64,000 nucleotides of DNA from Paraphysomonas bandaiensis (taxonomy: Eukaryota > Protista > Chrysophyceae), in NCBI GenBank assembly GCA_965644295.1, contig CBFFRP010000352.1:310001-374000 (forward strand), read 5' to 3'. This document shows positions 21,293 to 59,811 of the stretch, piece after piece (within the stretch, counting starts at the first letter, position 1; each line of letters begins with the position of its first letter). A program made the position numbers and the translations under genes. Below the pieces are notes generated by a model, which saw nothing but the letters and a program-made list of their open reading frames with translations, did no database searches and was not told the DNA's origin.

Positions 21293-22610
21293 CTACCCCA
21301 ATGCAATAATAATACATGAGGCATTATCTGCTGCGTATCCTATAAAAGAAAAAATATTAAGCTTGATACACACAAAGAAAAGTACTTACGGTTTTTTCTC
21401 CAGAAGTCTGACACAGTGGCAGATATACAGAGATCGCGAGCAGCAGTGGTCAACATCTCGTTCAAGTCTTGCCTATTCGCAATGAGATTTTCTTCCCACG
21501 GCCCATCTCTGTACAAACAAATGAAACCTAGTTAAAATCTTTCTATATTAACTTACTCCAAAGCAGTTGCATCCGCCTTTAAATTACAATTCATTCGTCC
21601 CGATTCGATATGGCGTTTTATCATTTTGAATACCTCAGCTGGTTTTAGAGCGTCCCACACTCCGTCTGACGCGAGTACCACCATACGCAAATCTCCGGGC
21701 AGCAAATACTTTTCGACAGGCCCATGGTGGTGTATGATGGCCTCTCGCAGACCACCGAGTCCAGGAATTTTGGCATAAAAGTCACCGAACGAACGTGTTA
21801 CCATAAGGCCTCCTGGATACACCCTAAGGGGCAAGTTGTTTGAGCGGGAGAAAGGGCAACAGGAGAATAACGAAGTTTGTATGATAGATTGATGAACCGC
21901 AGCTCCAGCACTATGACATCGATCTACTTCGGCAGGGTTAGCAGTAGAATGATCTTCAGTTGCTTTGCTAAGTGTGCCATCAGAACGCTGAACGAAAGCT
22001 GAGCTATCACCGCAGTTCGCTATGTACACATGACTCCCCACTATCAGACAGACCGTGGCAGTGGATCCATCTCGGAGTATTCCAGACTCTGTAGAAAGGT
22101 GCTGGTATAGCTTTTCATCCATAATCCGCCATGTCTCTTGCAATGCCGCACTAGGGTCCGAACATATTAAGGGGTGGTGTGCTAGCACCTTGTGGAACTC
22201 TGAAGCAAGAAATTTCGAAGCCTCCCCTCCTCCATGACCTAAAGAGATTATCACATACATACAACTTACACTTCATTATTATAGCGCACCATCAAATATA
22301 GCACAATACATCCTCATGTCATTGTTTGGTGGTTTCGATATGTAACTATTGAGGTTAACACAAACAGCAAAATCCTCTTGAGTCTCTTTTCTGCCTAATT
22401 CCAAAGCGCCCCCGAATGTTACAGTTGGGGTAATATCAACAGGATGAATCTGACTGACGGGCATCACGTCACATTGTTGGATATATATATATATTGCACT
22501 GTGTCGTGTATCGGGGGCGTCTGCTCATGAGGAGTGCAGAGTGCAGTTGTGTGCTGCGTGCTGCTGCTGTGTGTGTACAACTGAACAAATTTTGTCCAAC
22601 AAGTCCCCAT
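21293..22610 (-). CDS. Protein phosphatase 2C (PPM family) with N-terminal MGTC
   Basis: GRKETQED, AIFDGHGG, DGSTA, ANCGDS, TRSFGD, LASDGVWD, DNAS motifs. Confidence 0.92.
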
Positions 22611-23959: not shown

Positions 23960-26740
23960 TCACAAATCCTGAAACTCATTCCTAGGGAACACTGAAGCTT
24001 TCGTACTTGATGAAAAGAATGTCACATATGCTGCTAATCCAAGACCTATAAGATATAAGGTTTCAGTTCAATGAGTATGACATATTTCAACGTACCTCCG
24101 AAAACCACTCCAGCTGCAACAATAATAACCCAGAAAAAACCAAGCGGTCCAATTAAGTCATCTTGAAAATAATGGTCAAACTCTCAGAATAACTAATTGC
24201 CCCACGTACCATCAGGAGTTTCGGTAGGATAACTTGTTGGAGCTTCTGTTAAAGCCTGAAAATCTGCAAAAGAAAGAACCAGATAAGAATCCATCATCCC
24301 CAGATCTTGATGCCGCAAGAAGTGGCAATTAACAGCATTTTCTCCTGTGAATTGTGCCACGCGAAATCTGACCCTAACAGCAGATGCAACAGGAGGAAGA
24401 GTGTCTCGCCACTGACCCACCTCATAATACTGGCGGTAATCATAATTGTCGGATTCCACCGAGATAATTTGAAAATGCTGTATGCAACAAATTTGTTAGA
24501 ATACAAGTTTCAGTTTAATATTTATATATACTAACATGAGGTTGTATAGTTAGAGCATGATGGGAAGATCCAAGACCATACAATGTCCATTCGTGAACAG
24601 ATCCCATAAAAGTAACCATTTTATTTCGTTCAATATATACTCCAGGGTTAGTTCCTCTGCTACCTTCAAACTGACTAAAGGGACACTCAAAAATTGATGC
24701 ATTCGGATATAGAGGGCCATATGGTTGAACAGAGCTACAATCAGGCCCAGAACCTAGCCAAAATCCACATTCTGACGAGTTTTTCCCGGCCTGATTAACG
24801 CTGAGAGAGTACCACTGGTCAACGGTTGCATTCACATCATAGAGATCAGTGAGGTAATACGGCCTACGAATTCCAGCAAGGTGCTCATCGGTTACAATTC
24901 TTTTCGTTGTTCCTGTTGCCGTAACAACTATGTGAAAGAACAGCCCATTCCCTAGATTATACATAGTGAAAACGCCTAAAAGAAACAGATGATGAAAACA
25001 TTATACAAATCGTATCAGACATACCAACTGTATCGCAATATAATTCTATGTCCACTCTACCCCCTGCAACCACATTAACCACCAACTGAGGTGATCTATT
25101 CTTAATGTACACCCCGTCCCACGCCAGCACAGTCATTGTACATTTATCACTATCGGACGTAACTAGCCTCAACGGCCCAGCTCCGGCCGCATGAACTATT
25201 CGAAGTATAGTTGGAGAATTTCGAACAAGAGAAATACTAGGCTGATACTGTCCATTTATGAGGTCAATGCTACTCATGCCCTCATTACTTGTGTTGAGTT
25301 GAAAATTCATGTCCAACGTACTTCCTGTTTCAGCTGAAAGCTCTTGCAATGAATACGACCTAAAAGGATTGAAGGGCGAAGACTTTTCATTTCCTGCAAA
25401 ATAATTAGATTAGATGAGTTGCAATTTGTTAAGTGGATGTTACCTGAACACAGCGGATACTGCGATACAGGATCACAGGACCAATCAACACCACAACCCT
25501 GAGAAACATTGCCTTCTACCGTTTCTGAATTAAGAACAATATTCGTAACTATCATCAATATACTTCTCGAATTCTTTAAAGACGTCGGGTATTTTAAAGA
25601 TTTATCATCAAGATCAGGTTCAACGACAATTCCGCCAGCCAAACCACCCATAAGTTGCATGGCAGACGAACCATGAGCATGTGAATGATACCAATGTATA
25701 CCTGGCGCATGATTTTCCTTTATACTGTACCTATAAGTCAGAGTTTCACCAGGAGATGCAGTTCTAAAAACACTATTAATCGCAGGATCCACATGTAAAC
25801 CGTGAGTGTAGAAATTAGTTGTATTCGGACTGTGCATTCCATTTCGAACAGAACTGTGAGTAGAGTTAATAACTTCTTGTGGTCCAAGTTCATTCACCAA
25901 TGTTAATGTCAGATTATCACCAGGTCGGAAACGTATAGTCGGGCCAGGATAACTGCAGTAAGAATGCGTACAAAATGTACGTGTGGTAAAGGTAACTGGC
26001 CCTGCAGTAACTCTATATTCTCGGACATAAAGAGTTAATATCCAATTTCTTGCCCTACCATATCCTGAACTTAGTAGTGGCATACTCGTAAGCTCTTTAG
26101 CAGTAAGTTCAGAAAGGGTTGTAGGTTGTGCTGAGGGAACAGGTGTAGGACTTCGTGTTGGATTAGGGGTAGGAGTCATGGTTGGAATCTGAGTCGGATT
26201 TATCGTACTCGTTGGTGGTAATGTTGATGGTGTACTTGTTATTGGTGATGTTGATGGTGTACTTGTTGGTGTTGATGTCGATAATGTACTGGTTGGTGTT
26301 GATGTTGATGGCGTAAAGCTTGGATATGGCGACAACAGCGGAGCTTCACTGGGAGATAAGGATGGTGTAATCGATGGACATGGAGAAACTGTTGGAATAG
26401 AAGTAGGATACGGTGTTGCAGTAACAACGTCGATAACCCCTTTCATACTGGAGTGAATGGAACACTGGTATGAGTACTCGCCAATGTAATCAAACGTGAC
26501 AGAATACACATAACCATATGCAGCAATTACACTTGAGCTCTCAAATGTATTATCTGTCGAAGTAGATTGTACGCTGTGTGGTTCGCTATCTCTCCATATC
26601 CAAGACACTGTATCTCCCACATAAATAAGAGTCCTATTCTGATCCCCAACAGAAATATTCCAATTCAGTACAATCGTTGAAGCAAATATTTGCAACAGAT
26701 TTTGAATGGATATAAGAACAAATAGTGCATAAACTTGCAT
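23960..26740 (-). CDS. Type-I membrane protein: signal peptide, plastocyanin-like cupredoxin, Thr/Pro/Ser linker, 3-domain multicopper-oxidase fold with degenerate trinuclear site, TM helix
   Basis: VGDTVSW..PHSV..YQCSIHSSM; YPGPTIR; TNFYTHG; HWYHSHAHG; HALTIQPHHFQ (spliced); WRDT; NCHFLRHQDLGMM; TM FFWVIIVAAGVVFGGLGLAAYVTFF. Confidence 0.88.
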
Positions 26741-26904: not shown

Positions 26905-27152
26905 TACATACATACATACATACATACATACATACATACATACATACATACATACATACATACATACATACATACATACATACATACATACATACATACA
27001 TACATACATACATACATACATACATACATACATACATACATACATACATACATACATACATACATACATACATACATACATACATACATACATACATACA
27101 TACATACATACATACATACATACATACATACATACATACATACATACATACA
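26905..27152. repeat. Perfect (TACA)n microsatellite, ~62 units
   Basis: Uninterrupted tetranucleotide array. Confidence 0.99.
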
Positions 27153-27253: not shown

Positions 27254-29355
27254 ATGTCGAGAATGGCTACCCGAATGTGCAGCAGGGTAGGTGTGTGTAG
27301 ATGTGGTTAAAATGGATGTGTATTTATATGTACAGCACAGTGTGCAGAGAATGTGTGTATGTGTGTATATGCATGTGTATGGTGTGTGTGGCAGCAGCTC
27401 ATATATCCACAGGGTCTGCGAAGATTGAATACAGCCTCTGCTTCAGCTATGCGCGCGCCATCACTACAGCATCTTTACACTGTGCCCCCCACAGATATTA
27501 CCACAGTTACTGGTGGTATGAGAGTGGCCTCACAGGTGATACACAGCCACCCCTTATCTGACTGGTTTAATATTATACTTCTTGCGAAGACGATTGCTGG
27601 TGAGACTGCAACAGTTGGCGTGTGGATTGATACTGGAAGTCGATACGAAACCGCAAAAAACAATGGTGTTGCCCACTTTCTGGAACACATGAGTTTCAAG
27701 GGAACTCCCTCTAGAACACAGCATCGATTAGAAGAAGAGATTGAGAACATGGGGGCGCATTTGAATGCATATACATCACGTGAACACACAGTGTATTTCG
27801 CTAAAGTTTTTAAGAATGATGTGCCCAAGGCAATGGAGATTCTATCTGATATTTTACAGCACTCTATCATGGACGAGAAGGCTATTGAAAGGGAAAGAGA
27901 TGTTATTCTAAGAGAAATGGTCGAGGTCAACAAGGTAGTGTTAGACATTTTACTTATTTTTGCTCATACTGAATAATACCTTGTACAATGTATTGATTGT
28001 ATGCGTCGCTGCACAGATCTATGAGGAGAGAATCCTTGATAATCTCCACGAGACCGCATTTATGGGTACAAGTAAGTTATTGTTGTACTCTTCGTTGTAG
28101 ATGTGGATACAGTTTACTGCGGCTTCTATGTATCTGCTATTTGTTATTGATGATGTAGCACAAGTCGCAATTAAATTTGTATGCTCCCCTAACTATTGTT
28201 TTGTAGGTCTTGGCCACACTATCTTGGGACCTGAAGAGAATATTCGCTCTATCTCCCGCAATGATTTGGTTGACTATGTACAGACAAATTACACTACCGA
28301 TCGCTTTGTGATCGCCGGGGCCGGAGCAGTTGATCACAATGAGCTTGTTGAACTGACCCAGAAGTATTTCGGAAGCCTTCCTACGACTCCGAAGGGCGGC
28401 AAAAAGATCGAGATGCAACCCGCCGTGTTTACAGGATCTGACAAACTTATCCGATATGACTCCATGCAGGTGAACTGAGTGCATAGTGTGGGAGGAGAAT
28501 ACATCAATGCTAGTGTAGTGGTCATAAATCAAGTATTGAATGTAGTTAATGACCACCTATTTGATAGGAAGCTCATGTCGCACTTGCATTCGAGGGCGTC
28601 CCATGGACCTCTGAGTTTGCCTTTCCTATGATGGTCATTCAAACCATTTTAGGTCAATGGGACAGAAGTAATCCTGCAGGTGCCAATGCTGCTTCTAGGT
28701 GAGTGATATCGTTATATCATCCTGTTATGCACTACTGTGAAACATGTGTACAGGCTTCTGCGTATACATTCGTGGCTTATGTAAACGTTGTGTAGGCTAG
28801 CCCGGGAATTGTGTGAAAATGAAGCAGCTCACTCATACATGACATTCAATACTAGTTACAAGGTAGTCTTGGGCAGCTATGAATACATACAATAAAACTT
28901 TTGTTTTGTGGCTGTATTTATTTGTCGTGTAAGGTAAAGCTAACGTTTTGTGCCCTCAGGACACAGGTCTCTTTGGAGTGTATCTAACTGCAGAGGACAA
29001 GAAGCTGGAGGAGGCTATGTACCATGTCACATCTAACCTTACTCGTATTTGCCACGAGGTCACAGACGAAGAGGTTGTCCGCGCGAAGAATCAACTCAAA
29101 GCGAATGTCCTAATGCAGATGGACAACTTTTCATCAGTGTGTGAGGATATCGGCCGACAATTATTAACGTACGGACGCCGCATGTCTACTGCCGAGACTT
29201 CCGCAAGAATTGACGCAATTACCACCGATGATGTCAGAGTAACTGCAAACAAATTCTTTAATGACGAAGACCATGCACTTGCAGCAATCGGGCCTATATT
29301 TGAGCTTCCTGATTACAATTGGATCAGGCGTAGATCTTACTGGAATAGATACTAG
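27254..29355 (+). CDS. PMPCB: Mitochondrial processing peptidase beta subunit
   Basis: Arg/Ser-rich presequence, GSRYE..NNGVAHFLEHM (HxxEH), LNAYTSRE, EDIGRQ, LPDYNWIRRRSYW. Confidence 0.96.
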
Positions 29356-31925: not shown

Positions 31926-34049
31926 CTATAGGTTGAATTCATCTATTTCATCTTCATCATATTTCTTCCCTTGTTGCATGGTGACCGCATATCGAGGAAC
32001 TTTAGGTTCTCTCCGACTTTTGAGAATTTTTCGAGGAAGTTTCTTCGAGAGCTTCCATATTAATATAGTTCCGATTGCAATAACATACCACACAAAAGAA
32101 TAGTCAAAAGGCCATGTCAAGCCACTAGACGCTGTCCATGCGAAAAGGGCACTACCACTGGCAGGACCGATCAATCTACCTATTGAAGCCATTGTTTGGC
32201 CAATACCATTTACCTTGGCACGCTCGTGGCTATAGCAAGAATTGTTTATCAGCACAAATACGCACACAAAGCTCCATCCAATAGCCATACTCATTACTGT
32301 ATAACTGAATGTCACAAGTACCCATTGCAAATTTGGCAACTCATCAACATGACCAAAAGTGATAAATGGGGAAAAGAGAGCCATCACACCATATATAACA
32401 ACGCCAAACCTAAATACTTTCAGTGCCCCGTACTGCTGTACTATAACGGGGTACAAAACTACTTGAGATAGAACACACACGGGTCCCGACACCATGATTG
32501 TGATTCCGATTTCGTGAGACTTAAACCCGAAACCGCCCTCTTCACTAGGAACCACTAGCCACAGGGGAAATATCTCCACCATAACAACATGAACTAAAGC
32601 CAGAAGGCCATAGAGAAGAGTGCTGATGAAAACCATTTTGTTACGCATAATTTGCCGTAGTGATCCCCACGAAGAAAGATGTTGTTCTTCCCATCCGTCC
32701 TCTAGTAATTCAGAGCCGTTACTAAAGCGTTCTGAGGACTTTGCCATGAGATCCTCTGCGGCGTCATATGGCTTCTCAGATTCAATTCGAGAGGTTCTAC
32801 CTTGGGTAATAGGAAGGGCGCGGTCCTCTTCAGTCACACGCTTCAGTCTTCCATATTCTAAATCACTCGTCTCAATAATTTTCATTTGTACTGTGCCATT
32901 GAAAGATACTCCTTTCTTCTTTCTTTGGTTTTTTGCGGCCTTATCATCTGCGGGGTCACATGGATTGCGTGGAGGTTCTAATGTATCTACAGCGACAGCG
33001 TGGTGTGCTCCTGTCTGACTTCCCTCCTCTTCGTCTCGTAGTAATGTATGAGTGAGTTCGCTTTCACTCTCCTGTCTAATTAGCTCGTTATCGCTGGTGC
33101 GCACATGCATGTATCCAGCAGGACTGGAGACTGCAGCAGACATGCGATGAAACAAAGAAGGCTTTTGTAAATTCTGTGCTGCACTATCATTCCCAACAGG
33201 ATGTAAATGCGGAGAAGTAAGTTCAACTGATTTATTTTCCATATTCAAATCCAAGCCGTGAGTCTTCTCGTCCAAACTGCCTGTGGACGAGTCCATCCTT
33301 CCATCATCATCACCATCGTCATCATCCACATCATCAGTAGAATTAGTGCCAAGTTTCATGTACACACTCCGTCCCTGACCAGATCCACGAACTACTTTCT
33401 CCTTCACCTGAAGAGTTTCTGTCAGCTCGAAGTACGCCACGCCCAGTACTACCACACAAAACACGACAATGACAACACACGGCAGAGCGAACGGGTACTC
33501 TGCAAACACTGTACCCTGGAATATATCGTATCGATTTGCTGGTTGAGATAGAAAACCTCCTATTATTGGGCCAAAGGTTCGACCAAGTCCGCCTATAGTA
33601 CCAAACATAGCCATACCTTTACAAGAGTTCGAGTCGTCATGTATTTCTGCCATATATGTCTTTCCAACACCAACATTACCATTCAGAAGGCCCCACAAAA
33701 ACCGGGCAAATACAGCTACCCAAAAACTAGGTGCAAACCCAAAAAGAGCCGCAGATAAAGCTGTACCTAAGAGTCCCAGTAAGAGTACTGGTCGCCTCCC
33801 AAAACGATCAGCAGCCACTCCCCATATTAAATTCCCCACCATACTACCCAAACTAAAAGCCGATCCTAATACACCAGCCATGTAACCAACCTCTACTTCA
33901 TGAATATTCGGATAGAAATGAATCACCATAAAGGGGATGAACGCAAAGATCACCCATATGCTAGCGTTGTTAGCGAATAATAAGAGTCCGAGGACACATA
34001 TCTTGCGCACTGGTAGAGGAGTCTGTGTGTCAGTGTCAGAGATATGCAT
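31926..34049 (-). CDS. MFS transporter (ZIF1/ZIFL-like, DHA1 type) with a very long acidic central loop; apparently intronless
   Basis: WGVAADRFGRRPVLL, RFLWGLLNGNVG, GPIIGGFL, YPFALPC, KVNGIGQT; 6+6 TM pattern. Confidence 0.92.
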   Translation of the reverse strand: MHISDTDTQTPLPVRKICVLGLLLFANNASIWVIFAFIPFMVIHFYPNIHEVEVGYMAGVLGSAFSLGSMVGNLIWGVAADRFGRRPVLLLGLLGTALSAALFGFAPSFWVAVFARFLWGLLNGNVGVGKTYMAEIHDDSNSCKGMAMFGTIGGLGRTFGPIIGGFLSQPANRYDIFQGTVFAEYPFALPCVVIVVFCVVVLGVAYFELTETLQVKEKVVRGSGQGRSVYMKLGTNSTDDVDDDDGDDDGRMDSSTGSLDEKTHGLDLNMENKSVELTSPHLHPVGNDSAAQNLQKPSLFHRMSAAVSSPAGYMHVRTSDNELIRQESESELTHTLLRDEEEGSQTGAHHAVAVDTLEPPRNPCDPADDKAAKNQRKKKGVSFNGTVQMKIIETSDLEYGRLKRVTEEDRALPITQGRTSRIESEKPYDAAEDLMAKSSERFSNGSELLEDGWEEQHLSSWGSLRQIMRNKMVFISTLLYGLLALVHVVMVEIFPLWLVVPSEEGGFGFKSHEIGITIMVSGPVCVLSQVVLYPVIVQQYGALKVFRFGVVIYGVMALFSPFITFGHVDELPNLQWVLVTFSYTVMSMAIGWSFVCVFVLINNSCYSHERAKVNGIGQTMASIGRLIGPASGSALFAWTASSGLTWPFDYSFVWYVIAIGTILIWKLSKKLPRKILKSRREPKVPRYAVTMQQGKKYDEDEIDEFNL

Positions 34050-34495
34050 GACTATGAGGGGATATAAATACAATGACTATGCTATGATTGCACAGGCAAC
34101 GTGCATTCCAGGGTCTGGTATGACTGCCCGCTCATATGGACTGGACATATGAGAGCTACACACTGTGCGGTATACGCTCTAGGACTAGACGACTATACGT
34201 ATACCAGGTACTGTATATGCAGCATACACTGCTACACAGTCACATGTGCCTGGCTCGCTCCTAATTTTTGTGTAGCTCTACAGAGCGTGAATACCACAAT
34301 CAGTAATACTGTATTCCGAATGCAGTATACAGACTACAACACCGTGTAGTGGTGCTGCTGCTGTACGCCTATCCGTATAGACCTGTATGTTTATGTATTT
34401 TCATGGGCATAAGGAATGTGCTGTTACTATATGAATATACAGTGCAGCAGAGCAGAGTGGTGGAGGTGGTGCATTATTCTCACCCATTAGCTGCT

Positions 34496-36067
34496 ATGAG
34501 TAAACTATCGACCAATGAAGTATCAAATGAGCCATGTGATGATATTGCGCATGCAGAGGAGTGTGCAGAGGAGACCGATAATCCATCCAATCAGGACCTC
34601 GTATCTAAGTCCACTCTCATAGCTCTGTCTATTGCTTATCTCTCTGTCTTCATTGATATTCTCGGAGTGTCAATTATTTTACCGATTATTCCGTTTCTAG
34701 CCATTAAGTTTGATGCGGGATCCCAGGAAATAGGATATATATACGCCGGCTATGCTGGGGCTCAGATGATATCTGTGCCCCTCAGTGGTACGCTTTCGGA
34801 TAGATTTGGCAGACGTCCGTTGATGCTGATATCTCTCTTCGGGTCGTTTGCTGGGTTTTTGTTTCAAGGCCTTGCTTGGAACATTATGTCCTTCATATTG
34901 GCCAGAGTTGTTGCAGGTGCTTTTGGTGGATCAATTCCGCTGTGTCAGTCCTATATTGCAGACGTAATCCCACTGCAGAGTAGAGGGCGGTACTTTGCGA
35001 TATTAGGTAGTGTCATAGTCACTGCATTTTTATTTGGACCGGGAATCGGTGCCGGCTTGGCTCAGTTTACTTTACAGACCCCTATGCTTGTGTCAGCTGC
35101 TGTGGCTTTTTGTGGATGGGTTATCGCTTATTTCTTCTTTACGGAGCCCGATAAACTTGGACCTGTATCACCAGCTGAGGTCAATGGTGATGATACACCT
35201 CGCCACGAAAAGATTGTAGCCGACAACGATGCAGAAGAGGATGGCGACTGCATTCTCACTGAAGTGACTGACAAGTACGATTCTCGTGTGTACCAGTGGT
35301 TGATTCGGCTCCTCTGGCTTGCAAGCTTCTTCCAGATGATGGCATTTAGCTCAATCTTATATTTTTTTGGACTCTTTACGTATGATCAGTTCGGATGGGA
35401 AGCACTGGAGGTAGGGTTCAGCACAATGCTCATGGGCATATTCCAAGTAGTCATACAAATTCTCCTCTTTCCGAAGATACAGAAAAAGTTAGGAAAACAT
35501 GGGTGTGGCATGCTGGGATGCTTGTCTGGGTGCATTGGTATGCTCTTACTTGGTTTTGTGAATGGGGATGCGAGAGAGTTCACAGGTGTACCACTTTTGG
35601 TCATCGCTGTGGCAATCTCAACTTTTGGAAATGCATGCGTAGTGCCGTCGCTATCAGCTGTGCTTTCTCGCTACGCATCTCAAACACGACAAGGAAGAAC
35701 TCTTGGGGTTGCCCAATCCGCAGAGGCATTGGCACGTACAGTTGGACCCCTGCTCTGGGGCGGTGTTTATGAGACCTCTCGGCATTTGCCGTACCGAATC
35801 TCCACCGTGTGTTATGTAATGGCGGGATTTATGTTTTTTGTGGTTCTATATAACAACCTTCGTTTACCTGAACACCAGAAGCTCAGTAGTGATGAGGAAG
35901 AACGAGGCCACATTAAAGACACGCTTGGTTTAGAGGATAGTATGAGCGTTGAGGAACAGTTGAAATTTCTCATTGAAGAGAACCGCCATCTGAAAGAAAG
36001 GATAAAAATATATGAAGATACATATGATGTTGATGCTTCCGGTGTTTTAGAAATACAGCGGATCTAA
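34496..36067 (+). CDS. MFS transporter (TetA/DHA1-like) with C-terminal coiled coil; apparently intronless
   Basis: D(I)LGVSIILP, GTLSDRFGRRP, RVVAGAFGG, GPGIGAGL, QGRTLG..LARTVGP. Confidence 0.92.
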   Translation: MSKLSTNEVSNEPCDDIAHAEECAEETDNPSNQDLVSKSTLIALSIAYLSVFIDILGVSIILPIIPFLAIKFDAGSQEIGYIYAGYAGAQMISVPLSGTLSDRFGRRPLMLISLFGSFAGFLFQGLAWNIMSFILARVVAGAFGGSIPLCQSYIADVIPLQSRGRYFAILGSVIVTAFLFGPGIGAGLAQFTLQTPMLVSAAVAFCGWVIAYFFFTEPDKLGPVSPAEVNGDDTPRHEKIVADNDAEEDGDCILTEVTDKYDSRVYQWLIRLLWLASFFQMMAFSSILYFFGLFTYDQFGWEALEVGFSTMLMGIFQVVIQILLFPKIQKKLGKHGCGMLGCLSGCIGMLLLGFVNGDAREFTGVPLLVIAVAISTFGNACVVPSLSAVLSRYASQTRQGRTLGVAQSAEALARTVGPLLWGGVYETSRHLPYRISTVCYVMAGFMFFVVLYNNLRLPEHQKLSSDEEERGHIKDTLGLEDSMSVEEQLKFLIEENRHLKERIKIYEDTYDVDASGVLEIQRI

Positions 36068-42362: not shown

Positions 42363-45300
42363 ATGTCCCCCGTGAACATGCATACAGCACTACCACTGTC
42401 TTGTTTATTCTGTGTGTTTTACGGCTCCCTGTCTCTACAATGGGATACAGGCATATACGCCTCTCAGCCAGTGGCAAGCCCGAGTATCTCCACTGGGGGC
42501 GATATCGAGACATTTGGTAACATAGGGACCCTTGCAGTAGGAGGGGGGAATTACGTGAGAGTGTTTTATGAAGAGTATTCCGTGTCAGGTGGGACCATAT
42601 CATGGAGTTATGGTGCTGAGCTACGAGGGTCTCAGCTCACCAATGATTTGGGGTATGCTATATCTGCCGGGGAAAGTTTGAAAACTCTTGATGTTCTGCT
42701 AGCCAGTGCACCGACCAACAACTCGTTGTATGTCTTCAAGGACACTAGAACGCATTGGTCTGAACAGCAGCTGCTGGTTTCGAAAGATTCAAGTGAAGGT
42801 GACTTATTCGGCCATGATGTTGCTGTCAATGAGTTTGATCCTCGATCTGGTATTGTGGGTGCACCTTATGATGATGATATGGGGACATCATCGGGTTCAG
42901 CTTACATACTCTCTGCTTCTCCTACCGCTACATTTTGGACGATTGGTCAAAAACTTCAACCAAGCGATGCAGAAGAAAACGGCTTGTTCGGTTTCGAGGT
43001 GGATATTGTTGACAGTTACGCTGCAATCACAGCCCCTGGTAGCTGTCAGGTGTATTTATTTAAAGAAGTCGAAAAGCAATGGTCTGAGCAGCAGATACTC
43101 ACTTACACTGGATGTACCTCTCTTAGCATATCTCAATATGGCGAGAGACTTGTCGTTGGGGTACCAGGGGACCCTGGGGATGTCTATGTCTTGGAGCCTA
43201 AGACATACCGAGGAGAATGTGGGGGGGATTTTATGCCAACAATGTTGTCTTTTGATGAAATTGTTGCCATGCGCGACGACCCCTCCATCGACCTTAGAGA
43301 ATCTATATTTTCTTTTAATCCGACAGATATCAAGCCAAGCACTACTAAAATTTGTGAGGTTACGAAGTGGTCGGAGCAGCAGGTATTAACTGGCTCACTA
43401 GGAGCGGCGACATGTCAAAACTTTGGTATTGATGTGGACATATACGAAGACACACTCATCGTGGCTGACACTACACATATAGCCGCTTGTCCCACACCAT
43501 CCCCTACATCGCAGGGAGGAGTCCACATTTATGAGCTGTTCCAGGATTCTTGGACTTTATCTGACACCGAACGTAGTGGAGTAGCCTATGTCACTGACGG
43601 ATATGGGTCGAATGAAATATCTCTCACTGGAACAGATTTCGTGGTGGGAACTGCAACAGGTGTAGATGATGTCTATAACTATAACACAGACTATAACTGG
43701 GATTGTGTTATAATATCGATGGGGGACCAGTTTGGAGATGGGTGGGGTGGGGCGGAGCTTGTTATTACGCATCCTGATGGTAAAAAAGAGCGTTACGCAC
43801 CGTACTGTGATTCTATTCAGAATCCGCATTATATTAGGTGGTGCCCAGACAACAAGAATGATGTTGGGACTGTAGAGATGGAGATTGTTCGGGGCGAAGA
43901 CTTTCCGTTTCATTGGGAGATCCAATGGTCCGTAGAACCAGAGCGCACAGGAATCCCTGTGTATGGCGACGTGAACACGAAAATGGAAGTTGATTTCCAA
44001 GGGGACGAAATGAGAGTGACAGCAACATCTGATTGGTTGGAGGAGGGTTCCACGTGCAGCACCGTATGTCATTCCATTCTTACTCACATGCCGACCCCAG
44101 CACCAGCACCTAAACCGGCCCCTGCTCCGTCTACAGACACAGGAATGAATTCTACCAAAGCTAAACCAAAGCCACCTCCTCCTGATACTGTCATTCTCAC
44201 TCTCACTCTGTCAGATGTTGGTGCTGACTCATGGCACCAGGATTACAACGGCGGTACCTCGTATTCCATCACGAATAGAGATGGGTCAGAATTGTTTGCC
44301 TATGGTACAATGTGTGCATCTCAAATATCTCAGACATGCTATATTGAACTGCCGGAGGATATGGAGTTCGTTTTCCGTGTGGGTGGAGCATTAGATACCG
44401 ATGCCGGCGACCACTCATGGGAGTTCTGCAATACTAACGGTATGGTGCCGTATATAATGTTTCCTTGCATACATATTCTTATCGGTACTTATAGGTGGAG
44501 CGGTGGAACAGCTAGACTTTACCACAGCTTATGGACGGTGCACAGTTCAGGAGGAGTATACTCGTGGTACATACTGCGATAACGTGGCAGAGATTGCTGT
44601 CCTGAGCAATGGAATCCTTCTGTTGCACGGATTAGGTGATACATCTTTGAATTCCGCGGACGAGGCGGCCCTAACTTATGCTCTTTCTCAAGCATTGCAT
44701 AGCAAATATCTATTGGATGCGACGTATTCGTACAGCTATGATACTTACTTTCATGCCCTTAAAGTTGAGTTTGGAATTTATGTGCCCACTAGTACGTATG
44801 GATTGAGTGGAACGGATCATGACAATTTGCATGTGACGTTCGATATCGCGGTAGACTACATCTCTGAGGCTATCAGTTCTGGGGAGCTCGGTAGTTATAT
44901 TACCGAGTTCGTGGGAAATCACCCGCGAAAGACATTCACGATCATGAATCATGGCGCAATTCAATTAGAATCTGTGGCAGAGGGGTCATGGAGGAACCGG
45001 ATTCACTTGACATCATCCCCTTCGCCTTTCTTTGATACCCTTCCGACCCCTTCTCCCACTTATACCCGTGCTCCTTCTACTCCTCGTCCGACACTCTCTA
45101 GTGCTTCCATCACGAAGAGTGGGAAACAGTCTCCTAAACACAGTAGCAAAGATGAAGGGGCAGAATCTGCTTCTTATGTGTATATTGCGGGGGGGATGTT
45201 AGCTGCCGTCGTGTTTTTGATGGTGTTAGCTAATAAAAGCCGAGATAGTATAGCATTCTCGAGGTTTGATGTTGACTCAAATTTACCAGGGTCTGATGAT

Positions 45301-57837: not shown

Positions 57838-59811
57838 ATGGAAGGAAGACTCCTCAATGAGCAGTCAGAGATTGCGCATGAGTTTGGCGCCCTCAACACA
57901 TTGCTCTTGGTCGTTGTTCTTGGACTATGCATACTTAGTGCCTATCTTATTAAGCAGCACAACTTCTACTATCTTCCCGAGTCTGCGGCCGCTATTCTTG
58001 TTGGGATAGTTGTTGGAGGTAGTGATCCTACTGTTTGTACTGAGTTCACTAATGTTTCCGCAGGGTTAGCACGTATAGTTTATCCGAGTGAGGAAGAATT
58101 AGAATTTCTTACATTTGAACCGGAATTGTTTTTTTTCTTGCTCCTTCCTCCTATTATATTTGAGGCCGGGTATACGCTGAAGAAAAAGGAGTTTTTTGCT
58201 AATTTTTGGACTATTGCACTCTTTGCTGTTGCAGGGACAATAGTGTCGACTGTAATCATTGGATTTCTTGTTTATCTTATGGGTTTAATAGGTGTAGCCT
58301 CTGTTGATACATCCAATCCTATGGAGGCGATGCTCTTCGGTGCACTTATATCAGCTGTTGATCCTGTTGCTACGCTATCCATTATGGGGAACCCGAAGCT
58401 AAATTGTGACCCTTTGTTGTACAACCTTGTGTTTGGCGAAAGTGTCCTCAACGATGCTGTTGCGATTGTTTTGTTTAATACCTTTATTGATTTTTACCAA
58501 TCCGGGAACGATTTCTCAGGATCCACTATTCCATCTGTTTTGCTACGATTTACAGTAATATCTCTTGGTTCTGTCTTTGTAGGAATCGTGATAGGACTTG
58601 TATGCTCGTACTTGTGTAAACATACCCAGATGCGTCGGTATCCGGAGTACGAGATATCCATGATTTTTCTCTTTGCGTATGGTAGCTACGCTTTCTCTGA
58701 AGCGTTGAAGCTGTCTGGAATTATGAGTCTCTTTTTTTGTGGTGTAGTTCTCTCGCACTACAATAGCCACAACCTTTCAGCTACCTCCCAAGTAACGGCA
58801 CACAATATATTTAAATGCATGGCTGGCATGTCTGAATTTTTTGTTTATTTGTACATGGGCATGGGTTTTTTTACGGGACGCTTTAGAAACTGGAACTTTG
58901 TGTTTATCATCCTTTGTATCATTTTTTGTCTTCTCTCCCGAGTGTGCAACAGCTTTCCATTTTCATATCTTGCCAACATCTGGCGTGCTCAAAAAATACC
59001 TTTTGAAATGAAATGTGCCATATGGTTTGCTGGACTTCGGGGCGCGATTGCCTTTGCACTGTCTCAAAATATGCCAGGACATAACACTGACTTGTATGTC
59101 TCGACCACTTTGTCTATTGTCATATTCACAACTGTAGTTTGTGGAGGGCTGACGGAGCCTATGTTATCGAAGTTTGGGATGCGCGGACAGCCCCTTCTCG
59201 GTACGGACAGTGAATCTAGATATCAGGTGCGCATTCTATATGTACGACTTATTGCTGTTACTATGTGGGAGTTGTTGTATATGTTATTACTTTTGTGGTC
59301 ATGACCTTATCTGCTTTGTGTAACAGCTTAGTGCACCGTTGGATTCACCTCTGGCTGATGATGAGGAAATAGAGCGTTCGGCAACTGGCGCGCGAAACTT
59401 TTGGTCGAAGTTTGATGCTACCTATATGCAACCTTTCTTTGGGGGTGACGAGGTAGGAAGACTTATTGTACGTACCGCTATATATTCCTTTGGTTTTATG
59501 CGTATTTCTATGCAAAGATGGCAGAAAGTGAACTCGACATCAGCGTAAACTCCCAGCAAAGCCGCCGGCGATCCGATGAAGAGTGGTCCCTCCAGCAGCA
59601 GGAAGAGGGTGGAAGTATTGTAGGATGGGATACTCGCCTTCCATCAGTTCTGAGTAGTAGCTCGAGGGATAGCGCATCATCAGCAACACCTCCTCACCTT
59701 TCACAGCATGGGGTTACAGGAGAAGAACCTATTGCAGTTGGTAGATGTTCAGTGCCTAGAGGATTAGCGAAATACATTCCACCAGGGAGTGCTGCCGATG
59801 TGCAATTGTAG
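57838..59811 (+). CDS. Na+/H+ exchanger, CPA1 family (NHE8/NHX-like)
   Basis: FFFLLLPPIIFEAGY, LISAVDPVATL, LVFGESVLNDAVAIVL, WFAGLRGAIAFAL. Confidence 0.95.

Follow-up and report, generated by a model that had tools for sequence, protein, structure and literature searches.

A membrane-anchored multicopper oxidase relative in Paraphysomonas bandaiensis with a depleted trinuclear copper cluster and two intact blue-copper ligand sets

Introduction

Plants, insects and bacteria all contain relatives of the multicopper oxidases (MCOs) in which copper sites have been lost, and the functions of these proteins are mostly obscure. Here, we describe a protein that adds to this group and is not clearly a rewired enzyme. 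It is encoded by the protist Paraphysomonas bandaiensis on a stretch of 64,000 nucleotides (contig CBFFRP010000352.1, positions 310,001 to 374,000 of the forward strand), which is termed the window below and whose first letter is position 1. An earlier note on this DNA had proposed a surface protein of MCO fold with two blue-copper sites and one three-histidine (His3) site in place of the trinuclear cluster. Then, does the copper inventory of this protein represent a new enzyme, or what is left over from an old one? Literature searches found no paper on Paraphysomonas MCOs or on the clade described here.

Gene model and transcript

The whole coding sequence lies on the minus strand of the window at 23960..26740, which is exactly the locus delimited by the earlier note, and encodes 841 amino acids in six exons (26740-25444, 25393-25025, 24975-24536, 24477-24210, 24161-24096 and 24045-23960, stop codon included). 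The five introns are 48-58 nucleotides long, each of them begins with GT and ends with AG, and the frame is open throughout. Intron 3, which follows the third copper motif, is located at 24535-24478, where the earlier note had placed it at about 24479-24534.

The gene model is supported by a transcript. A peptide of 269 amino acids (P0054) from the transcriptome MMETSP1103 (taxon 36769, genus Paraphysomonas, a colorless chrysophyte stramenopile) is 100% identical to the model over residues 560-828, crosses introns 3, 4 and 5, and covers copper motifs 3 and 4. Therefore, the gene is transcribed, the intron at motif 3 is spliced, and the residues that replace histidines there are real in RNA. 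Both the splicing of this intron and the possibility that RNA restores the histidines had been named as checks in the earlier note; the splice is confirmed, and no histidine is restored in motifs 3 and 4 of the peptide. For introns 1 and 2, the basis is the colinearity with related proteins and the matching intron positions of two relatives, the loci L001 and L003 (see below). The open reading frame of exon 1 has zero exact matches in public assemblies, and another open reading frame of the window matches the MMETSP transcriptome collection letter for letter. In summary, the gene is expressed and intact.

Domain architecture

The protein is composed of a probable signal peptide, an amicyanin-like cupredoxin, a linker rich in Thr, Pro and Ser, a three-domain MCO body and a transmembrane (TM) helix, in this order. 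The hydrophobic N-terminus (about residues 1-21, 26678..26740 on the minus strand, as are all features of the protein) is a probable signal peptide, with a hydropathy peak at residues 3-25 and equivalent N-termini in related proteins. It is followed by an amicyanin/plastocyanin-like cupredoxin (residues 22-105, 26426..26677), which matches the Pfam family PF00127 (Copper-bind) with 28.1 bits (cut-off 21.2). This domain carries the full ligand set of a type 1 (T1) blue-copper site, namely H55 (26578-26576), C93 (26464-26462), H96 (26455-26453) and M99 (26446-26444). All four ligands, in the arrangement His...Cys-x2-His-x2-Met, align with those of amicyanin, and the same ligands are conserved in the canonical relatives.

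The linker of 115 amino acids (residues 106-220, 26081..26425) is recognized by its composition, 70% Thr/Pro/Ser (T 30, P 27, S 23), and by a tandem repeat. The repeat unit in its DNA is 27 nucleotides long and occurs in 4.1 copies with 82% matches at 26205-26315, so the tether is partly made of 9-amino-acid repeats and may differ in length among strains.

The MCO body is colinear with three-domain MCOs across all three domains. It matches PF07732 (Cu-oxidase_3) in exon 1 with 45.3 bits (cut-off 21) and PF07731 (Cu-oxidase_2, cut-off 20.4) with 26.3 bits in exon 4 and 33.5 bits in the transcript peptide P0054, and, among proteins of solved structure, its best matches are the Thermus MCO 2xu9 and the Campylobacter protein 3zx1. 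Exon 3 by itself gave no Pfam or PDB match in the sequence search, and the structure predicted for domain 3 from an alignment of 10 rows, with a mean predicted local distance difference test score (pLDDT) of 45, was too poor for use.

Near the C-terminus there is a TM segment of 31 residues (794-824, 24014..24156), which is split by intron 5 and covered by P0054. Apart from the N-terminus, it is the only hydropathy peak of the protein. A tail of 17 amino acids extends from the TM segment to 23963, and the same tail architecture is present in the relatives L003, P0032 and P0166. Thus, the MCO fold, the tethered intact cupredoxin, the signal peptide and the TM anchor that had been read from the letters are all supported by the Pfam and PDB matches, the amicyanin alignment and the hydropathy profile.

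The tail itself (window 23963-24013; about 2060-2125 in L003) contains a motif resembling [S/T]-[K/R]-x-x-V-[F/I]-P, which recurs in similar form in each of the four lineages that make up the degenerate clade introduced below, P0032 and P0166 included. This similarity may reflect a conserved signal for sorting or for an interaction in the cytosol.

Copper motifs and lost ligands

The four copper motifs of the MCO body were aligned, column for column, with the canonical motifs of the full-length relatives P0007, P0008 and P0009, and with solved MCOs, of which 2xu9 covers motifs 1 and 2 and 3zx1 covers motif 4. The ligand states were read from a profile alignment of 180 family members. Since the ligand columns are 100% His or Cys in all 115 canonical members of the family, the four substitutions described below are genuine and not alignment noise.

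The assignment of the ligands follows that of Fet3p, in which the type 2 (T2) copper is bound by the first His of motif 1 and the second His of motif 3 (PMC4203857). One of the two type 3 coppers (T3-alpha) is bound by the second His of motif 2, the third of motif 3 and the first of motif 4, and the other (T3-beta) by the second His of motif 1, the first of motif 2 and the second of motif 4 (PMC4203857). Motif 1, canonically H-x-H, reads Y311-T-H313 (25802..25810), so that its T2 ligand is gone and its T3-beta ligand is retained. Motif 2, H352-S-H354 (25679..25687), retains both histidines, one T3-beta ligand and one T3-alpha ligand. Motif 3, canonically H-x-x-H-x-H, reads H695-A-L-T698-I-Q700 (24542..24559); the T1 His is retained, the T2 and T3-alpha ligands are gone, and intron 3 starts two codons further on. 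Motif 4 reads NCHFLRHQDLGM, that is N752-C753-H754-x3-H758-Q759-x3-M763 (24295..24330), where the T3-alpha His is gone and the Cys, His and Met of the T1 site as well as the T3-beta His are retained. Motifs 3 and 4 are also covered by the transcript.

Consequently, 6 of the 10 histidines and the Cys are present, and the protein lacks the full MCO ligand set of ten His and one Cys that forms the T1 site and the trinuclear cluster. The missing ligands are the first His of motif 1 (Y311), the second and third of motif 3 (T698 and Q700) and the first of motif 4 (N752). The T2 site has lost both of its ligands and T3-alpha two of its three, and the T3-beta set (three of three) and the T1 site are complete. 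The earlier note had read the motifs as YTH, HSH, HALTIQ and an altered motif 4 and had listed the same losses, and its readings hold under the alignment and the Fet3p assignment.

Two further positions, unseen by the earlier note, reinforce its conclusion that the trinuclear cluster, and with it the four-electron reduction of O2, is lost. N322 (25777-25775), nine residues after motif 1, stands at the equivalent of CueO D112 and is Asp in 114 of the 115 canonical relatives, and Q759, next to the T1 His, stands at the equivalent of CueO E506 and is Glu in 98 of the 115. In CueO, D112 and E506 have been implicated in proton delivery during O2 reduction (PMC2944330). The second-sphere carboxylates of a functional MCO are therefore replaced by amides here, and, with the T2 site gone as well, the sequence makes canonical four-electron O2 reduction by this protein very unlikely. 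As for ferroxidase activity of the Fet3 type, there is no acidic residue four positions before the T1 His, as judged by eye only.

Canonical relatives

A profile search of 1.84 billion representative sequences yielded 1561 proteins at E < 1e-30, most of which are fully canonical, and the nearest canonical relatives are 45-54% identical to the window protein. Word searches with domain 1, the transcript peptide and P0166 as queries gave no relative closer than 54-57% identity, a distance at which saturation is expected at synonymous sites, and a profile scan of metagenomes returned canonical relatives only.

Among the canonical proteins, P0001, P0002, P0003 and P0005 share the arrangement of signal peptide, cupredoxin, Pro/Thr linker and MCO body, with all visible copper ligands retained. 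The same Paraphysomonas transcriptome also contains P0164, a cupredoxin-tethered MCO in which 12 of 12 ligand positions are intact. The tethered cupredoxin is thus ancestral, and the proposal of the earlier note that it forms part of a rewiring fails, since canonical relatives, including this paralog in the same organism, carry it too. The gene in the window is a diverged paralog of a normal oxidase.

The degenerate clade

The window protein has its C-terminal anchor, its tail and the replacements by Tyr or Phe, by Asn, and by Gln or Lys in common with three other lineages. The first, L001/L003, is a metagenome lineage reconstructed from two loci; it is the relative most similar to the window protein (57% identity) and has the same five intron positions. 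The second is the P0166 group (P0166, P0167, P0168-P0170, P0172, P0175 and P0176), and the third is P0032. In a tree built with the ligand columns omitted, these lineages are arranged as (P0032,(window,(L001/L003,P0166))) with supports of 91/89 and 97/99, and the clade is nested, with support 100/100, among canonical proteins that include the paralog P0164.

The ligand states of the four lineages form a series. With the ligands of motifs 1 to 4 written in order and followed by those of the cupredoxin T1 site, the window protein reads YH HH HTQ NCHHM and HCHM, L001/L003 reads FH YA HSH KCNHM and HCHM, the P0166 group reads YH RQ LHQ GTSQL and MCHL, and P0032 reads YH SN QSK QSNHV and HCFM. The cupredoxin state of the P0166 group was taken from P0167 and P0176. 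In the region upstream of the P0166 frame (L009 3-290), no cupredoxin-like sequence was seen in frame 1, the sole frame translated, and the N-terminus of P0166 may be truncated or frameshifted in the assembly.

Asn and Gln at the D112-like and E506-like positions are found in the window protein, L001/L003 and P0166. The changes of the first His of motif 1 and of these Asp and Glu residues are common to the clade, which indicates a single loss of oxygen chemistry, in the common ancestor of the clade. Beyond these shared changes, the ligand losses differ lineage by lineage. In L001/L003, two of the three histidines of the His3 triad (H313, H352 and H754 in the window protein) are replaced, by Tyr and Asn, and the T1 site is intact. 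In the P0166 group and P0032, the triad is broken and the T1 Cys is also lost.

Could the locus then reflect a pseudogene in decay, or an error in the gene model or in the assembly? Changes at four ligand and two second-sphere positions would fit such a reading, and exons 1 and 2 are without transcript cover. However, the frame is open over six exons with canonical splice sites, the transcript peptide is exact over three introns, and the Tyr/Phe, Asn and Gln replacements recur in independent sequences from other samples. In addition, the end branches of the tree lengthen as ligands are lost (0.27, 0.45, 0.98 and 1.38), and the shortest one, 0.27, belongs to the window protein. Taken together, the transcript, the open frame and the short branch led us to reject the pseudogene reading, and the chance that decay or artefact accounts for the locus is considered to be very slight.

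The fate of the three-histidine triad

H313, H352 and H754, together with the dipeptide C753-H754, are present in the window protein, and the model of the earlier note would make use of them. According to it, this is an enzyme that has been rewired: the tethered cupredoxin would hand electrons to the MCO T1 site, from which they would travel through Cys753-His754 to a single copper at H313/H352/H754. This copper would act like the type 2 site of copper nitrite reductase, in one- or two-electron chemistry on a small substrate. In favor of this model, the T3-beta set is complete, the Cys-His dipeptide is in place together with the entire T1 set, and the surroundings of motifs 2 and 4 are near-identical to those of canonical relatives. 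Moreover, the short branch of the window protein points to strong purifying selection on the whole protein, and nitrite reductases with tethered cupredoxins (9cck and 6hbe) are among the PDB matches of the N-terminal domain.

The related lineages do not fit this explanation. None of the three remaining lineages of the clade has an unbroken triad, and this holds even for the most similar lineage, where T1 is kept. H313 is retained in every degenerate relative, even in those with no other ligands, which makes it a poor indicator of copper. With four of the eight cluster ligands lost at random, this triad would survive in 5 of 70 cases (7%), and either of the two T3 triads in 10 of 70 (14%), so its survival is not compelling. 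The acidic residues near the cluster are neutralized and the tether is not new, both of which also count against a rewired enzyme, and we regard this explanation as quite unlikely. The earlier note had read the loss as patterned so as to leave a functional mononuclear His3 site. It had also suggested a search for homologs with the same Tyr/Thr/Gln/Asn pattern and had named, beforehand, heterogeneous loss as evidence to the contrary; heterogeneous loss is what the relatives show, and they do not support the claim.

The two T1 sites vary in step. Those of the cupredoxin and of the MCO body are both intact in the window protein and L001/L003, and both altered in the P0166 group and P0032, which represent two independent losses. 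This co-variation over few events is suggestive of the tethered cupredoxin and the MCO T1 site working as a pair. Therefore, of the copper inventory in the earlier note, the pair of blue-copper sites has gained some support from being kept and lost together, and the functional three-histidine site has not.

A proposed surface protein without oxidase activity

Based on the evidence above, we favor, as a moderately probable reading, a membrane-anchored surface protein that is dead as an oxidase, holds two T1 coppers and takes part in one-electron transfer without reduction of O2 to water, with the His3 pocket as a relic. The anatomy, the transcription, the ligand states, the phylogenetic position and the differences among relatives are observed; copper binding at the two T1 sites, the electron transfer and the cellular location are what we infer. 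The product of this expressed gene would be a type-I membrane protein, whose ectodomain comprises the three-domain MCO body and, tethered to its N-terminus by a long and probably glycosylated linker, the amicyanin-like cupredoxin. The small clade to which it belongs would have arisen once from canonical cupredoxin-tethered MCOs. At its base, the T2 His would have been replaced by Tyr or Phe and the two proton-supplying carboxylates by amides, with the loss of the oxygen-reducing chemistry, and the remaining cluster ligands would afterwards have been lost in combinations specific to each lineage. The window protein is the slowest-evolving and least degraded member, in which both T1 sites are kept and the three histidines of one former T3 copper are left over. 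Its place may be the cell surface or a lumenal compartment, and its role that of a one-electron carrier, an oxidoreductase or a redox-linked partner; the His3 pocket would be a relic rather than a selected catalytic center.

Several points weigh against this reading. H352, H354 and H754 have been held although about 43% of the aligned residues differ from the most similar relative; unconstrained sites would be expected to change over such divergence, and some constraint on these residues, structural or copper-binding, is therefore possible. Only four lineages are available, none of them closer than 57% identity to the window protein in the searched collections, and the co-variation of the T1 sites rests on two independent losses.

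The pocket of H313, H352 and H754, maybe together with H354, Q700 and N752, could on the contrary hold one copper that is fed from the T1 site via Cys753-His754, which we consider improbable. If it did, the protein would be a natural single-chain enzyme with a T1 and a type-2-like site derived from an MCO, with its own cupredoxin as the electron donor and one- or two-electron chemistry at the surface. Copper binding in the pocket would also make the protein a natural experiment in the conversion of an oxidase cluster into a mononuclear site.

Alternatively, the protein may be a non-redox pseudoenzyme. Here, the MCO body would be a scaffold for adhesion, for metal binding or sensing, or for partnering a transporter or the canonical paralog, as in the proposals for SKU5/SKS, MCORP and FtsP, and the retained ligands would be slowly decaying relics. 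The two sister lineages without the T1 Cys and with altered cupredoxin ligands still show the whole architecture, with the TM helix and a cytosolic tail that is similar, and their genes are uninterrupted reading frames on short contigs (2.3-3.5 kb). The function shared by the clade thus need not require copper redox chemistry. Furthermore, known MCO relatives without copper have essential roles other than oxidation (PMC4203857). However, the window protein and L001/L003 keep all eight T1 ligands of the two sites in canonical context, and the rise of branch length with ligand loss suggests a tighter and different constraint on the copper-bearing members. A pseudoenzyme in this sense is unlikely for the window protein.

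The main value of the locus is that it is one step in a graded natural series from one ancestor, which comprises the full oxidase, T1 with a His3 remnant, T1 only, and no MCO copper site. Such a series could reveal what in the MCO scaffold is of use without oxygen reduction, and whether the tethered cupredoxin and the MCO T1 site function as a pair.

Comparison with known systems

With canonical MCOs (2xu9, Campylobacter McoC 3zx1 and E. coli CueO), the window protein shares the domain order, the Cu-oxidase_3 and Cu-oxidase_2 domains, four alignable motifs and a T1 site with axial Met. It differs from them in the absence of the T2 ligands, of two of the three T3-alpha ligands and of the D112- and E506-like carboxylates, and in the addition of the N-terminal cupredoxin, the long linker and the TM anchor. 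The cupredoxin-tethered MCOs of protists (P0164, P0001, P0002, P0003 and P0005) are its direct phylogenetic neighbors with the same architecture, but they keep the ligands.

The likeness to the copper nitrite reductases with tethered cupredoxins (9cck and 6hbe) is conceptual only, and concerns a layout in which a further blue-copper domain accompanies a T1 site and a His3 copper would be reached via a residue beside the T1 Cys. In NirK, which is a two-domain trimer, the His3 site is situated between subunits and the bridging His is located before the Cys. In contrast, the window protein is a three-domain chain and not a two-domain subunit, its retained His follows the Cys, and its His3 site is not conserved among relatives.

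Insect MCORP, plant SKU5/SKS and Bp10, and E. coli FtsP (SufI) resemble the window protein in having an MCO fold that is unable to form the normal copper centers (PMC4203857, PMC2661564). MCORP is also membrane-bound, and MCORP and SKU5 keep the T2 His and lose T1 and T3 (PMC4203857). The pattern in the window protein is the opposite, with T1 and one T3 triad kept and T2 lost. Since the window clade is nested within protist MCOs (100/100), its origin is independent of MCORP, SKU5/SKS and FtsP; it does not descend with them from a common degenerate ancestor, and the likeness is one of kind, namely an MCO fold with lost ligands.

Other members of the wider family

Ligands have been lost independently at least seven times among the top 150 relatives, so degeneration is a repeated outcome in the wider family. 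For example, P0096/P0122 and P0087/P0146/P0178/P0180 are independent degenerate groups with other patterns, in which either the T1 Cys is lost with most cluster histidines kept or motif 3 alone is lost. Nine otherwise canonical relatives (P0076, P0081, P0091, P0104, P0112, P0121, P0125, P0126 and P0141) have Cys in place of Met as the axial T1 residue (H-E-D-x-G-C-M), which is unusual for blue-copper sites. Some canonical relatives (P0012, P0173 and P0179) have a C-terminal Hint domain of the hedgehog autoprocessing type (PF01079) in place of the TM anchor, and the bacterial relatives P0011 and P0013 have FN3 and PF18962 domains.

Neighboring features in the window

A perfect (TACA)x62 microsatellite at 26905-27152 starts 165 nucleotides upstream of the start codon and lies between the MCO-like gene and a divergent open reading frame (27353-27976, plus strand). 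An HFLEH motif and its flanks in this frame resemble, by eye only, an exon of an M16 metalloprotease of the mitochondrial-processing-peptidase type. On the other side of the gene, an exon of a PP2C phosphatase is located at 21553-22260. Further along the window, there are two divergent genes for major-facilitator transporters (31926-34073 on the minus strand and 34349-36067 on the plus strand), a gene for an FG-GAP repeat protein (42363-44582) and one for a Na+/H+ exchanger (57838-59304).

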